Source: Chlorokybus atmophyticus
Taxonomy: Eukaryota > Plantae > Mesostigma and Chlorokybus algae
Direction of reading: 5' to 3'
Length of the DNA stretch: 64,000 bases
NCBI GenBank assembly: GCA_009103225.1
Contig: RHPI01002990.1
Coordinates: forward strand, 854,490 to 918,489
A model generated the notes under the pieces. It was not told the DNA's origin and made no database searches. It saw nothing but the letters and a program-made list of their open reading frames with translations. The stretch's first letter is position 1. Every line of letters starts with the position of its first letter. This document shows, piece after piece, positions 17,776-33,590 of this stretch. The translations under genes were made by a program, and so were the position numbers.

Positions 17776-19312
<1,537 letters not shown>

Positions 19313-20102
19313 NCCCTCTGTCTCTATATGTATTGTATGTGTGGATGTATGTGCGGAGGTGACCCTTGGTTTGTTGATTACTTACTGTTCTCTTTCTTGC
19401 TGGCTTCGGTTCCTGATCTACTTTTCTGTGATTGAGCTCTTTTTAACTCGTTCCCATGCTGAATTTTCTCGCCAGTCCCATCACTCACGGGTACTGTTTT
19501 CCCAGTCACTGAAAAAACATGGGGGTGTTGCAGATGCAACTGTGCAGCACAGGCGCGTGGCGTATGTCACAGGGCGCAGTCACTCTTGTCTAATGCACAT
19601 GGCTACCTTTGCGTTGTTAAGTTGGTAACAGCCATACAGCCTGTGTGAATGACGCGGCCATGACTCAGGAGCAGGCATTACCGCAGCCTGCGCGTGCAGA
19701 GCACAGTGACTGTACAGGTTGGTGTGGTGGTAGCTATGCATACAGCAGGGCAGAGAGGTGGCAGGGTGTACTGTACCAACAATGCGGAACGGAAATGCAC
19801 ACGCATAGTGGCATGCACCGTCAGCAGTGCGTATTGTGCTACAACGAGACTGTGTGAGTGTGCGAGTGAGCCAGGGTGAGAGAAAGTTGAGAAAGAGGTT
19901 TGTGCTGGTATCATGCCCTCACCCAGGGCACACAGGATGAACTCTCAACAGGTGCACAGCTACGCTGAGATGAGCATGGGCGAGATGAAGGTATGACTGG
20001 GTAAAGCGTGTTGCTTTTTGCGGCACTGGGCGCTTGTGACACCATCTAATACACATGGCCACTTTGAGACATGTGCACATGCGCACGCACGCGCACACAC
20101 AG

Positions 20103-21434: not shown

Positions 21435-22569
<1,135 letters not shown>

Positions 22570-26795: not shown

Positions 26796-27311
26796 NNNNN
26801 NNNNNNNNNNNNNNNNNNNNNNNNNNNNNNNNNNNNNNNNNNNNNNNNNNNNNNNNNNNNNNNNNNNNNNNNNNNNNNNNNNNNNNNNNNNNNNNNNNNN
26901 NNNNNNNNNNNNNNNNNNNNNNNNNNNNNNNNNNNNNNNNNNNNNNNNNNNNNNNNNNNNNNNNNNNNNNNNNNNNNNNNNNNNNNNNNNNNNNNNNNNN
27001 NNNNNNNNNNNNNNNNNNNNNNNNNNNNNNNNNNNNNNNNNNNNNNNNNNNNNNNNNNNNNNNNNNNNNNNNNNNNNNNNNNNNNNNNNNNNNNNNNNNN
27101 NNNNNNNNNNNNNNNNNNNNNNNNNNNNNNNNNNNNNNNNNNNNNNNNNNNNNNNNNNNNNNNNNNNNNNNNNNNNNNNNNNNNNNNNNNNNNNNNNNNN
27201 NNNNNNNNNNNNNNNNNNNNNNNNNNNNNNNNNNNNNNNNNNNNNNNNNNNNNNNNNNNNNNNNNNNNNNNNNNNNNNNNNNNNNNNNNNNNNNNNNNNN
27301 NNNNNNNNNNN
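26796..27311. other. Assembly gap (N run)
   Basis: Run of N followed by a (CT)n tract. Confidence 1.
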
Positions 27312-27349
<38 letters not shown>

Positions 27350-28228
27350 ATCCAATGCAAGCATAGCCCCATTTGTCCTTTTGTATCATCTCCATCATAC
27401 AATCGCCAACGACAACGACAACAACAACAACAATTCCTACGATGATGATAACAATCCGTGATGAGGGCTTCACAAGCTACACGTTTGGTGGGCATCAAGT
27501 CGGGCACAGTGGTGGTGGGGACCTCATATTGAAGCACGGGTTTGCTACCTCGATACTCTTCAGCGTATCGAGGGGGTTCAGTCTCCTTTTCTTGCTTTGG
27601 ACTGACGAGCATAGCCCAAGTATTGATTGCAAACTATAATAGGTACCTACCACTACAAGCTGCAGAAGATCCACAAAAGCTGTAGCATGTCCTCATTAGC
27701 AGCATACGTGCGCACACAGCACAAGCGGTCAGCATAGGTGCGTGGGCAACAGGCGTGGGATGCGTGTCGAGCAGGGGCTACCGGCTTGACATAGCAGGTA
27801 CGGCACCTACTTAGTACCTTTTCATGAAACAGGCACGACTGCGTGTTAACTTCTTTCATCTAGCATGAATATGACACAACAAGGTTGTAAACAATGGCAG
27901 CAAAGTCGTATAAGAAACGGAAAGCCACATTCAGAATTAGCTGAGACATGCATAAACCTGCTTATAGCAATGGCCTGTAATGATGGCTAGGACAGTTAAG
28001 GACACGCCAGGATGGATCTCCTCCAAGACAAGGACTGTACTGCTCTGCACTCCATGCCAGTATAACCAGGCTCGTTTGCAGCAGTCAGAATGCTGCTGAT
28101 AAATCGATTGCACCAAACAAGTAGTGGTTTCAATACAAAGGTGTGGCGCAACCAAGTTAGCGGTTGAGAGAACAGTGCCGAGCACTGTTCTCTCAACCGC
28201 TACAGCTAATGCTTGCAACAAGGGGAGG

Positions 28229-31200
28229 TCAACAACTCCTTCGCGCCTTGGCAATGGCCAAATAAGGGTCCGTGGCAGCAGCCAACACGTCAGGGCGATC
28301 CTGCTGCTTGCTCGTCAAACACCGCCGGATGAATTCCTAAGACATCACGGTTGTTGTTACGCAAAGCCAACCCCACCAACCCATAGCATTATGCCGTCAC
28401 CACTATCTACTGAGCACCTTGCAAACAATAACTGTGGCAACACCAACAGTGATGGTTACAGTGTGTTAGTGCTTGACTGCTCAGCAAGGTCTCATTTACC
28501 TTTGCTTCATTTGACACAACTGGTTTGGGAGGAAACTCCACGCCGCGACTGCGAACGATGGTTTCTTCCCGCAAGATCTTTTCTTGGGATAGGTCGTGCC
28601 CAAATGGTCTTCGACCATACAGCATCTGATAGAGGATGACTCCAGCCGCCCACACATCCACCTGCCAAGGCATCCAAGTTCACAATCTCACGCTGCCGAA
28701 CACAGCTCTGCTTACATCCTGCATGACTGTGCATACCTTAGATGATATTCGCGGTGGCTTCCCACTCATCTCAAAGCACTCTGGCGGCAGATACCTGTCA
28801 ATAATACTCTTTAGCTACACAAGTATACTATCCACACAGTCTTATGTGCCTCAACCTGCTGCATGCCGTCACTGCCGGGCATAATCAATCTTACCAGTAA
28901 GTTCCAGCTCCCTGCGATGTGAGCTCCATGCTATCAATGCCGATTTCTTCCACAATCTTGCTTAACCCAAAGTCGGTGAGCTTTGCTCGTCCGTTAACAT
29001 CGAACAAGATGTTGCCAGGCTTGAGATCGTAGTGTATCACTCGGCGAGACGGGTCGTTCAGATAGGCCAGTGCTGAAAACACCTGAGATTCCAGCCAGAT
29101 GGACATCAGCTTCACGCCTGAGTCCAAACATGTGCTGTGTCATTGACAACACGCAAGACCATGCTTGCCTGCATTACGATGGTGCGCGCTTCACGTTCTG
29201 ACAGCATATGGTTGGCCTTCAGATGCGCATCCAAGTCATTACCTACATCAGCAAAGTGTCAGCCAGGGACCTCAGAAAGCTTTACAAAACCACTGATCAA
29301 GCACCGCCAACACACCTTCACAGTACTCCAGAACTGTGGCAAAGGTGTTGGTGTCAATCTCAAAGATGTCATGCAGGCGCACTATGCTTGGATGCTCCAA
29401 GTTGCGATGGATGTTGTACTCTCGCATAGCATGCCGCACGTAGCTCTGCTTCTTTGCTTCATTCCATTGCATATTCAGTTGATGAATCTTGCAGGCAACC
29501 TCTCGCAGGTCAACAAGATCGTAAGCCTGCGTTCAACAATGCAAGCAACATCGCGTTGGTGAGGACTCAATGGCCAGGGTGTGCAACAAGGGACAACAAC
29601 AGCAATAACCACCAGAGAGAGTGCACACCTTGTACACTTCACTGAATCCGCCCTTGCCAAGCAGATTCAACATCACATAACGCTTGTTCAGCACACAATA
29701 AGTGTTGAACCGTGAAGCATCCTCATCCCTGACTCGCTTCAACTCTCGTATGTGCTTGCTCTTTGCCGCGTCAAGCCTTTCTCTTTCTTTGAGCAAGTAG
29801 TCTTCTTCCTGATATGACAGTCATACTTAGTATCGTGTACACCATATACCAAAGATACTGTGACGGCACAATAGTCACAACTTACCTTTTTCAAGTTCGC
29901 TAGTTTAATTTTGTAAATCTCCTCTGCTATCTGCTGATCTTGGCCGGTCATTGCTCCGTTCTCGTCAACAGCTTCTCCATCTGCAAAGTTGGCTTGGTCA
30001 AAAGCCCTTAACAATAAGCGACAGCTGTTCACAAGTGTGGTTAAACGTGCTCACCTACAACAGTGGGAGGCTTCTTGAGCTGTTTGCGCAACCGTTCCAC
30101 TGCTTCGCGCTGTTGCGTGAGGGCTACCTGCGCAAGGGCGTCAAGTGCTGATACACGGTTTCTACAAAGCAGATGTGGTGTCAAGGAAGTTGGAGAAAAT
30201 CGTACACATAGCGACTACTGTACCTGTTTTGCATTCAGGTCAACAAATGATTGACCGTCTTCCCACACCTCTGACAGAACTGGCCCAGCTCTGGACATGG
30301 ACACACTGCCGATGAGCCTTGTTGTCAACAAAGTGTAAGAAAGGGTGCACGGTTGCTCACCTTTGCACACCAATAGTACCAAGCATGACTTGGTCCTGCC
30401 TGAGCTTCACTCGGCAGGCCATGCGCTCCTTCTTTGCCGCCTCAACGACCAAGTCCGCCAGCATTCGGCAAACCTGTTCGCACCCACCATAAGACACACC
30501 ACATGGGAGGATGTAATTGCCAAGCATGCCCAACAAAAACGCACACCTTCAACTCTCGGCACTGCTCACGCTCTGAGGCTTTCTGCAGCTCCTGCAAGTT
30601 ACAACAGCTGGTAAGCACCCTAATTGCAGACTCAACAAGGTTGCTGTGATTGATGGGCAGCATTATTGTTAATTTTGTCATACAGCTGCTGCCCTTGCGA
30701 GGTAATATAAAAGTAACTTCTTGCCACCAGATGGCATCTAAACACTTTTTAACTAGAACCGTACCGCAACAAGCTTCTGGTTCTGCTGCTCAGCCTCCTG
30801 CAGGGCCTCTTGAGCCCGTGTGCTTTGTTGCTGGGTAGCCTCCATTTGCGATCGCCATGATAGACGCTCTTGCTGAACAAGTACACAAGAGATTGATACG
30901 GTTTTCGTAATACAAGCAGTTCCGACACAAACGGCTTGCTCACAAACGGCGGGGGCTTACCTCAAAAGCCTGGCGCTGCTGCTCCAATGAGGCATGCGAC
31001 TTTTCCAGTGAGACCTGTCGTTGGCAAGTTAACAAGTAGTAAGCAAAGTTGAGATAAGCTGCATTCATGCATGGCAAGTATTGTGAAGTTCAATGACCGG
31101 GGCATAAGCATACCGTAGTTTGGCAACCCTTGGCCGTGCTTGGTGCGCAAATGCGCGTGGTGATAGATGCAACTCGCACATCTGTTTCCGTGGAGTGCCG

Positions 31201-32514
31201 TGATTCCTCATTCAACTGCATGCAGCATATAAACAGCCTTCAGAAATGGTTGAACACCTTACAATGTTGCACACTGCGCTTACCATGCAACCAATTACCT
31301 GTGCACTGAGCCTTGCTTTTCGACTTCTGGTCAGCCGAGCATCCCCGCTATCGTCATGCTGGATGCCAACGCTTGGAGGCGTGCTCAAAACACCATCCCG
31401 TAGCAAACGCTTGTAGCGGCGCTTCAATGCTGCCGGCGTTCTTTCTGGCAAGCACGACGATGACACTACATCCCAGTTTTGTCCATTATTTCGCACGCCC
31501 TGCGCACATTATTACAACTACTTGATTGCCAGTCAATGTGCGGACACGCAACTTGGCACATTCAGTGCTTCAATGCGAACCTCAAGCAATAGGCAATCCT
31601 CTTCCTTGCTGAATGTACGTTTGCTCATTGTCCTCTTTGTGCCTCGCTGGGCATTATGTGCCATATGAAAAGCCGCGCCGCTATCCTGCACGGTCTTGCT
31701 GTGATCAGGCCAGCGTACATGGGCAGTGCTCACCAATCCACACGCAACCAACGTGCTCGGTGATAACACTGCAGTCTAGGACATCTGATGCGTGCCAGTT
31801 CGGGCAACATGCAACAAATGTTGCCCGAACGGTTTACTGTTTCTTATCATGATGAACCACGACGTACGACCACAATCGAGGCTTTCAAATGAACCTGAAG
31901 TGACCACAGTGCTGCAGCTCGCTGCGACCAGCAGCTGACAGCAACCGCTTATAATTCATGCTATAGTCTTGCAGTACCATTGGACAACTGGCATGCTTGC
32001 ATCGCTAGACTGCAGCATCGCTGTGGTGACCAGCTCTCGCCATCGGCGTCCGTGCGCATTGCATGTATGCTTAAAGTAAGTACAACAAGCTCCAATTGTC
32101 CTCATTTTGCATGCGCTGTTCACACTATTGTTTGGTACCCCACCCCGCAACGAAGCGGTGGTAGGGCTTGAGAAGGATGAAACACATAGCTTAGGCTATC
32201 AGCAACCCGTGCGCCCATGTGACCTTGACTGTTCCAATTACCAACCACTTCCACAGCTTCAATTCGCCACAATTATAATGCTGTACTAACACCATTAGGG
32301 TTTGAGAGCAAAGTGCAAACGACAAGCTTACATCGTCGGAGTCGGAGGTGGACGGCAGCTCGTCGTCAGCCAAATCAGGGAGGACGAGGCCACTGGCGTC
32401 GGGAGCAGCAGCCGTCTGGGCCCCAGTCAGCCTGGCCTCCAGCAGGCGCAGGCGCTCGGAGGCGCCATTAGAGTTGGCGCTGTTGGACAGCTGGAGCATG
32501 AGCGCCTCCGCCAT
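28229..32514 (-). CDS. TSL: TOUSLED-like Ser/Thr kinase with an internal Myb/SANT domain
   Basis: Plant TSL-type N-terminus [31 protein letters not shown]; coiled-coil exons ([31 protein letters not shown]); kinase motifs [86 protein letters not shown]; ends EFIRRCLT...ARRSC*. Confidence 0.95.
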
Positions 32515-33590
32515 CGGGAGGAACGCCAATACAACTGCTGCAGCACAGCAACACAACCAACACGACCCCGAAAGAAACTTCAATCAGCTGAGAGCTCACA
32601 TCATGCCACACCCACAAGTTCAACAACGACAACGACCACCTCGCCCACAACCAGCACGCTGCCCTCCACCCGCCTACCACCCGCCGGATGCAGCACAGCG
32701 CTGCTGCTGTGCACACTTGTGTGCGCAAGCAAGCGGCAGGCGCCGAATTACGTGAATACGAACGCAGCAACCTGAATTGGCCGACCCGGGAAAACCCGCG
32801 AGACCCCGCCAAAAAAGCGAGTTGCGAAGCATTTGGGTGGTTGCGCAACATGACCTGAGGTCATTGACCCACACGTGTGCATGCAGAATGTGAAATGTAT
32901 ACCTACATCCAACCAGGGGTGCAGCTAAGGATCTGAACCTCAAGCCATTGGCTGTTTTGTGAGTAGGGTCGCATAAGTCCGAGCCACTTGATGGCTAATT
33001 CAGTTGAAAACTTGAACGCACCTACCAATATGTTTATGCATGTGTAGTTTTAGCAGCAATGCATGCAATGTGCTTATCTGAATATGCAAGTCAGCAAGCG
33101 AGCAACAATGTTTTTAGATTACGTGACATAAAGCTCACAACTTGCAATGCAGCTAGTCTAAGCGCTAACATGGCGTGTATCCTTATTGAGTTAGACCTTT
33201 GAGGCAGCCTTGTAGTTGAATTCGTCATGCGCGTAGCCGCTACGCGTTGCGCGCACACAGATTTTAAGATGCGGCTCCACGAGGCTATTGCTTGGCCTGT
33301 TTTTAATAATATTCATTGTTCAGAAGAAAGACGCTCGTTATGAACGCTACCTATTGGAAGCACTAGCATGATGCGAGCTAATATCAGATATTCGATGATG
33401 CGATCAGCTTGCAACACATTGCTAACCAACTGCTGCCAAAAGTTGAACGCCACCGCCAGGCGAGCCGCCGACTCCATCACCTGAGCAAAAGAATGCTATT
33501 GCGCATCAGTTGGTTGCACATCCACCAACGCAGAGACTGTGCGGGCGCCTGCATGAGTGTTTAGGACATGCTCTACTCTGTAGCAGAGAG

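Follow-up and report, generated by a model that had tools for sequence, protein, structure and literature searches.

Tousled-like kinases (TLKs) play an essential regulatory role in chromatin assembly and in the stability of the genome. To our knowledge, nearly all work on them has been done in animals and Arabidopsis. In TLK1 and TLK2, an N-terminal region is followed by three coiled coils and the kinase domain, and TLK2 dimerises via its coiled coils, which is needed for its activity (PMC6023931). In Arabidopsis, the kinase TOUSLED (TSL) binds and phosphorylates TKI1, a separate SANT/Myb protein (PMC4081062). A sequence-only reading of the present locus had made both points, namely that land-plant TSL and animal TLKs have no DNA-binding domain and that TSL binds a SANT/Myb protein. 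The interaction is as described in the latter paper, and the absence of a Myb agrees with the former and with the Pfam annotation of approximately 100 land-plant TSL and animal TLK entries, in which the kinase is present and the Myb is not.

The single TLK gene of Chlorokybus atmophyticus, a streptophyte alga in the Chlorokybophyceae, lies in a window of 64,000 nucleotides, which is the whole stretch of DNA analysed here. Its product resembles Arabidopsis TSL and human TLK1 and TLK2 in having an orthologous kinase and the same coiled-coil block. It is 57–65% identical to land-plant TSL over the coiled coils and kinase, and it shares with plant TSL a KLAKLEARM-like N-terminal motif followed by an acidic run. 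In the Chlorokybus protein, a complete Myb repeat separates the N-terminal motif from the coiled coils, whereas TSL and TLK1/2 have no Myb.

The gene is on the minus strand. The RNA contigs divide it into 18 exons and give a product of 708 residues, which begins with the TSL-type N-terminus and continues with the basic arm, a single Myb repeat, a linker, the coiled coils and the kinase (Table 1). In an exon-by-exon check, the frame is open through all 18 exons from the ATG at 32514 to the stop codon at 28231–28229, and the summed exon lengths of 2493 nt agree with the 2497-nt contig X1 described below. Exon 1 encodes the TSL-type N-terminus with its LLEARL motif and acidic SDSDD run. Exon 2 contains a TSL-conserved segment (residues 62–74), the basic arm (75–85) and Myb helix 1 (F86 to E96), and helices 2 and 3 (residues 97–129; positions 31499–31401) lie within exon 3. 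The donor of intron 2, GTTCGC, is weak, yet the RNA contigs are spliced there. Exon-sized open reading frames at 29800–28400 encode an unmistakable protein kinase, and the catalytic motifs are found in the translation of exon 15.

Table 1. Features of the Chlorokybus atmophyticus TLK gene, in window coordinates.
Feature	Position	Strand	Description and evidence
Exon 1	32332–32562	-	5'UTR and CDS from ATG 32514 (CDS 32514–32332); 61 aa; RNA contig start at 32562
Intron 1	31686–32331	-	646 nt, GT-AG; RNA contig and splice-site check
Exon 2	31581–31685	-	105 nt, 35 aa, phase 0; RNA, translation, Pfam, hhalign
Intron 2	31500–31580	-	81 nt, phase 0; cuts the Myb after helix 1
Exon 3	31299–31499	-	201 nt, 67 aa, phase 0; Myb helices 2 and 3, then linker
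Exon 4	31114–31215	-	102 nt, phase 0, 34-aa linker; joints 31215/31299 and 31012/31112, frame check
Exons 5–11	29886–31014	-	Coiled-coil region including the TLK-conserved G-x6-E-x-WEDG block; RNA joints, translation
Exons 12–18	28229–29808	-	TLK kinase domain up to the stop codon; Pkinase match, matches of single exons, joints
GC-AG intron	29083–29168	-	RNA contigs of two studies splice GC-AG
3'UTR	27911–28228	-	To contig end

The sequence-only reading had assigned two phase-0 exons, 31685–31581 and 31499–31299, to the TLK gene on this strand, and their translations are exactly as it quoted them. It had also described every inspected junction as GT-AG. This holds at the flanks of the Myb exons and for 16 of the 17 introns but not for the intron at 29168–29083, which is GC-AG. 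Its proposed junction from 31299 to approximately 31014 missed an in-frame exon of 102 nt, exon 4 (31215–31114), between the two positions.

A search of 1.84 billion representatives with a 70-aa kinase exon returned a 100% match to a public gene model of 705 residues (P0001; EukProt EP00898 P002224, JGI Chlat1 3001), in which the exon occupies residues 443–512. P0001 differs from the RNA-based product only at the GC-AG intron, where it is spliced differently and is without three residues, MQV. The longer form containing MQV is backed by the RNA contigs and by the TLK family consensus. Whole-protein tests were done on P0001, and exons were searched singly.

The RNA evidence consists of assembled contigs from two studies, placed on positions 27500–33400 of the window. 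Contig X1 (2497 nt) runs from the 5'UTR through the 18 exons into the 3'UTR, reaching 27911, and contains no introns. Since all 17 introns are missing from it, X1 is derived from spliced RNA. Its pieces cover 32562–32331 (record 1–232) and 31498–31299 (record 338–537), and the 105 letters between them are exon 2, for which the depth bins match 31581–31685 to the base. In X2, from a separate and older study, record 4 begins 54 nt within exon 2 and extends through exon 3. The contigs show 17 joints for 17 introns and no exon-skipping form, minor isoforms being beyond the power of contigs. Both Myb exons belong to the TLK mRNA as a constitutive part of it. The joints predicted in the sequence-only reading, 32332 to 31685 and 31581 to 31499, are therefore found in transcripts, with skipping absent from the contigs, and the Myb repeat that it had read across them is real, in frame and transcribed in the TLK mRNA in both studies.

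A further X2 contig of 157 nt lies at 32481–32637. The transcribed region thus reaches upstream to at least 32637, and the 5'UTR is longer than X1 shows (32562). X1 differs from the window at three bases, 28208, 28993 and 28996, with no difference in the exon 1 and exon 3 pieces, and X2 is identical to the window; X1 probably comes from a different strain, or else from a cryptic species of Chlorokybus. An assembly gap (a run of N) at about 26800–27300, with GA/CT repeats on its flanks, is located just downstream of the 3' end of the gene. Elsewhere in the window, two very long and perfect dinucleotide arrays, (CT)n, at 17777–19325 and 21436–22569 (774 and 567 copies, 99–100% match) account for the extreme GC and AT skew of the 18–24 kb region.

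In P0001, the Pfam profile PF00249 (Myb_DNA-binding) matches residues 84–129 with 30.9 bits, where the gathering score is 24.4 (E = 3e-7; profile positions 2–46 of 46), and PF13921 matches with 29.5 bits against a threshold of 22.9, the Myb matches together spanning residues 84–130. Both scores are above threshold, as the sequence-only reading would lead one to expect. The kinase domain follows at the C-terminus (Pkinase, E = 4.8e-55). When searched singly, exon 3 gives below-threshold matches to PF13921 (E = 1.3e-3) and PF00249 (E = 4.1e-3), and exon 2, which is too short, gives no Myb match in Pfam. The aromatic positions of the repeat are F86, W105 and Y125, spaced by 19 and 20 residues, and the sequence shows the LP-x-RT...K-x-R-aromatic pattern.

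The AF2 model of residues 70–140, built from a 20-sequence alignment, contains three helices at model residues 19–32, 36–42 and 49–61 with a core pLDDT of 93–95. Its best Foldseek matches are c-Myb R1 (rmsd 1.1 Å over 48 columns) and a TRF2–DNA complex (1.6 Å), each with a probability of 1.00. The Foldseek E-values are weak, which is normal for a fold of 50 residues, and SANT domains (MTA1/3, DNAJC2) appear at similar scores. By its score and three-helix fold, the domain is a member of the Myb/SANT superfamily (PF00249). Against a profile of the TLK-Mybs described below, c-Myb R1 scores 43.7 bits, TRF1 43.1, TRF2 41.8 and SNAPc4 37, compared with 24 for the SANT domains of CHD1 and RSC8. The pI is 9.6 in Chlorokybus and has a median of 9.7 over 20 TLK-Mybs; the net charge of helix 3 is +5 in Chlorokybus and +3 to +6 over the TLK-Mybs, and the arm is positive. 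The domain thus departs from the SANT subtype, for which an acidic or neutral pI and remodeller SANT domains as the closest relatives would be expected, both in its median pI of 9.7 and in its scores of 24 versus 43 bits.

The remainder of the protein is that of a TLK. The 70-aa kinase exon matches 558 proteins at E ≤ 1e-10, and those that are named are TOUSLED or tousled-like kinases. In a maximum-likelihood (ML) tree, the Chlorokybus protein falls in a clade with plant TSL supported at 100/99, which identifies it as a TLK/TSL kinase. In the G-x6-E-x-WEDG block of the coiled coils, R304, E311, W313 and G316 are invariant or nearly so in 68 TLKs and 9 Myb-TLKs. The plant-type N-terminal motif (KLAKLEARMAGK with the acidic SDSDD run) is present, as in the TLK/TSL family, and residues 1–74 of P0001 align with land-plant TSL N-termini in hhalign with a probability of 95% (E = 2.8e-8). 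The aligned part is made up of exon 1 and the opening 13 residues of exon 2. The notion of exon 2 as a foreign insert, which the sequence-only reading implied, thus does not survive, since the exon opens with sequence that aligns with the conserved land-plant TSL N-terminus.

At the end of the aligned part, land-plant TSLs keep a QKRxR arm, and beyond it the Myb is absent. The sole outcome of a profile–profile search for a Myb relic in land-plant TSL N-termini was a match of 18 columns at the basic arm (E = 0.09), which is no evidence for a relic past the arm. In Selaginella TSL (P0197, residues 67–80), QKRKTFQMDE is located where the Chlorokybus Myb starts; it may be the last trace of helix 1, at an E-value of 0.09 that is without statistical support.

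The Myb-TLK architecture extends well beyond Chlorokybus. A Pfam Myb is found in 8 of 68 full-length TLK representatives, and the number of TLK clusters with the repeat rose to 20 when the search was widened with phmmer and a family-specific HMM; the further Myb-TLKs listed by the profile search all have precomputed PF00249 and PF00069 matches, and the total is at least 20 clusters. Named carriers include six amoebozoan genera (Luapelamoeba, Stenamoeba, Balamuthia, Clastostelium, Phalansterium and Soliformovum), the chytrid fungus Synchytrium microbalum, the glaucophyte Cyanophora paradoxa, Anaeramoeba ignava (Metamonada) and Pharyngomonas kirbyi (Heterolobosea, Discoba), and metagenomic sequences are also among the carriers. 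The TLKs of Cymbomonas, Diacronema and Andalucia have the kinase and no Myb. Chlorokybus is the only member of Viridiplantae in which we found a Myb-TLK, in a sample of land plants, one chlorophyte (Cymbomonas) and Chlorokybus itself as the sole streptophyte alga.

On a 247-kb metagenome contig, Myb and kinase are encoded in one uninterrupted ORF of 650 codons, and the fusion is therefore no assembly artefact outside Chlorokybus either. This gene (L001:3001–4953) is intronless, encodes 650 residues and belongs to a gene-dense eukaryote. On the kinase tree, the metagenome Myb-TLK clusters with Myb-less representatives.

Further searches for relatives of the N-terminal part were of limited reach. 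A word search with residues 1–300 of P0001, a weak search owing to its strict word index, returned the query and one insignificant Myb/SLIDE protein; it revealed neither a close paralogous donor of the Myb nor a second green-algal Myb-TLK. The same index was too strict for the 61-aa region of a near-consensus TLK-Myb (P0161:75–135), which returned the query only, and a feature search of the ESM Atlas with residues 60–200 gave no usable match. Full-text searches combining tousled with Myb, SANT, Chlorokybus or algae found no paper describing a Myb-TLK architecture. In this respect the sequence-only reading, which knew of no described Myb-TLK, stands for the papers searched but not for the databases, where the carriers already bear an automatic Pfam annotation of Myb and kinase.

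The TLK-Mybs align in register between the N-terminal L-E-x-R-L motif and the coiled coils. Their shared features are a KKRK arm, F as the first of the aromatic residues and an EG pair that follows helix 1. When an HMM was built from the 19 TLK-Mybs other than that of Chlorokybus, it scored the Chlorokybus repeat at 46.8 bits, compared with 30.9 for the generic Pfam model. The Chlorokybus repeat is the most divergent of the set (19–32% identity to the others). Since c-Myb R1 and TRF1 reach approximately 43 bits against 46.8 for Chlorokybus, these scores on their own are no proof of one origin of the TLK-Mybs. The intron inside the Myb of Synchytrium is at a different place from that of Chlorokybus, a difference that favours neither a shared nor a separate origin.

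The ML tree was computed from the coiled coils and kinase only (412 columns), the Myb-bearing N-terminal part having been cut from every sequence. Chlorokybus lies inside the 100/99 clade with Myb-less land plants and Cymbomonas, and Cyanophora branches off immediately outside it; Synchytrium is placed with the animals, and the Amoebozoa form their own clade. The Myb changes state six times on this tree, and at least four changes are forced by strongly supported branches. An AU test rejects a single clade of Myb carriers (delta lnL 87.6, p = 0.0003), and the carriers are non-monophyletic. Scattered as they are on the tree, they therefore form no paralogous Myb-TLK subfamily. The pattern of carriers follows organismal groups, as predicted by ancestral presence and repeated loss. 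The TLK-Mybs most likely have a single ancient origin. Since the Chlorokybus Myb is homologous to the N-terminal Myb of many protist TLKs, it is most likely an ancestral TLK domain, which Chlorokybus would have kept and which land plants, a sampled chlorophyte, animals and others would have lost.

The sequence-only reading had instead proposed a new, Chlorokybus-specific Rosetta-stone fusion. The proposal gives way to the finding that TLKs from Amoebozoa, a chytrid, a glaucophyte, a metamonad and a heterolobosean have the same Myb in the same place. A broader version, in which Chlorokybus and each of the other carrier lineages captured a Myb exon independently in a fusion mirroring the TSL–TKI1 pair, would fit the patchy distribution with its six state changes, and the divergent Chlorokybus Myb on two small phase-0 exons would suit exon shuffling. 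Arabidopsis TSL binds a SANT/myb protein (PMC4081062), and the scores of generic Mybs with the TLK-Myb profile are almost as high. However, in all carriers the Myb sits at one insertion point, is preceded by the basic arm and has the EG signature, the leave-one-out HMM scores 16 bits above the generic Pfam model, and exon 2 opens with TSL-orthologous sequence. The search with the N-terminal 300 residues, within the limits of its word index, found no close paralogous donor, and at least six independent captures at one site would be unparsimonious; we regard independent capture as distinctly improbable. Much the same evidence bears on whether the architecture exists at all. The Myb exons as a separate gene or as chance ORFs were rejected, as RNA contigs join them to the TLK. 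That the exons of a separate gene, or of a rare isoform, were merged by gene prediction or transcript assembly could be argued from P0001, an automatic model that is wrong at one intron, and from RNA evidence in the form of contigs whose runs are only presumed to be RNA. Such an artefact is hardly credible in view of the intron-free X1, which is thus spliced RNA, of two independent studies that join exon 2 to exon 3 and to downstream exons, of the absence of alternative joints from the reports (17 for 17 introns), of the frame that is open throughout, of the TSL-conserved residues in exon 2, and of the same architecture in other species, once in a single ORF.

A different question is what the Myb does. 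Histone-tail binding is common among the single Myb/SANT repeats of chromatin enzymes. A SANT-like or NLS-only role of the TLK-Myb is possible, and the frequency of histone-tail binding among such repeats would favour the former, as would F and Y, not W, at the first and third aromatic positions and the SANT domains (MTA1/3, DNAJC2) that Foldseek lists at similar scores; the KKRK arm, for its part, resembles an NLS. The basic pI and strongly positive helix 3 are nonetheless unlike those of acidic SANT domains, and the profile is much nearer to the DNA-binding repeats of c-Myb, SNAPc4 and TRF than to CHD1 and RSC8 SANT (43 versus 24 bits). An ancestral Myb that serves as a SANT-like protein or histone module, or as part of a nuclear-localisation region, and does not bind DNA therefore seems unlikely to us. 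We consider it rather probable that the locus is a single TLK gene with a retained ancestral c-Myb/TRF-like domain that would tether the dimeric kinase to DNA.

Protist Myb-TLKs (e.g. Balamuthia KAL6043926.1, Anaeramoeba KAJ5070229.1 and Synchytrium XP_031026924.1) share the domain order, the Myb position, the basic arm and the EG signature with Chlorokybus, whereas the kinase part of the Chlorokybus protein is only 34–45% identical to theirs and nearer to plant TSL. In TRF1, TRF2 and the plant TRF-like and TRB proteins, too, a single Myb repeat occurs together with a basic N-terminal arm, and a separate domain serves for dimerisation. The TLK-Myb profile matches TRF1 with 43 bits over positions 6–60 and TRF2 with 41–42 bits over positions 4–59. 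Helix 3 of many TLK-Mybs, K-D/E-R-F/W-R-R-L-K, resembles the telobox. In contrast to TRF and TRB, where the Myb is C-terminal, that of Chlorokybus is N-terminal (residues 84–129 of 708), Pfam finds no TRFH domain, so dimerisation would use the coiled coils, and helix 3 (LKRRYKRLL) departs from the telobox, so that the likeness there is partial. The domain does not belong to the TRF/telobox family, and the likeness to TRF can be read as a functional analogy only.

Among c-Myb and R2R3-MYB proteins, c-Myb R1 is the best match in both sequence and structure, with the LP-x-RT...K-x-R-aromatic pattern in common, and plant R3 repeats can have F as the first aromatic residue. The Chlorokybus TLK differs from these proteins in having one repeat only and no transactivation region. 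TKI1 offers a parallel of another kind, in that its Myb-type domain is coupled in function to a Tousled kinase (PMC4081062), except that TKI1 is a separate polypeptide.

From the charge of the domain and its nearest relatives, we infer DNA binding and chromatin tethering by the TLK-Myb. The basic Myb and its lysine/arginine arm would contact DNA. Since TLK2 dimerises through its coiled coils (PMC6023931), a Myb-TLK dimer would offer two Mybs to DNA, presented jointly as in TRF-type single-Myb proteins. The Myb contact would then hold the kinase on chromatin, close to substrates such as ASF1 and histones. Extended to the last eukaryotic common ancestor (LECA), this becomes a tentative picture to which we give somewhat less than even weight: the LECA TLK may have had a TRF/c-Myb-like DNA-binding domain, tethered as a coiled-coil dimer and possibly directed to repeat or telomere-like sequences, and animals and land plants may have lost it and replaced it by recruitment in trans (e.g. 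through TKI1 in plants), with Chlorokybus as the only known green holder.

The Myb is found in TLKs of several supergroups and, within the streptophytes, in the lineage most distant from land plants, which suggests that the architecture known from model organisms is derived. Loss of the Myb would date to the land-plant stem or earlier within the streptophytes. An ancestral Myb would also offer a rationale for plant TSL working with a separate Myb protein, and direct DNA tethering of a dimeric kinase is a concrete and testable hypothesis for how TLKs are targeted to chromatin. The spread of Myb-TLKs would thus change the picture of the ancestral Tousled kinase.
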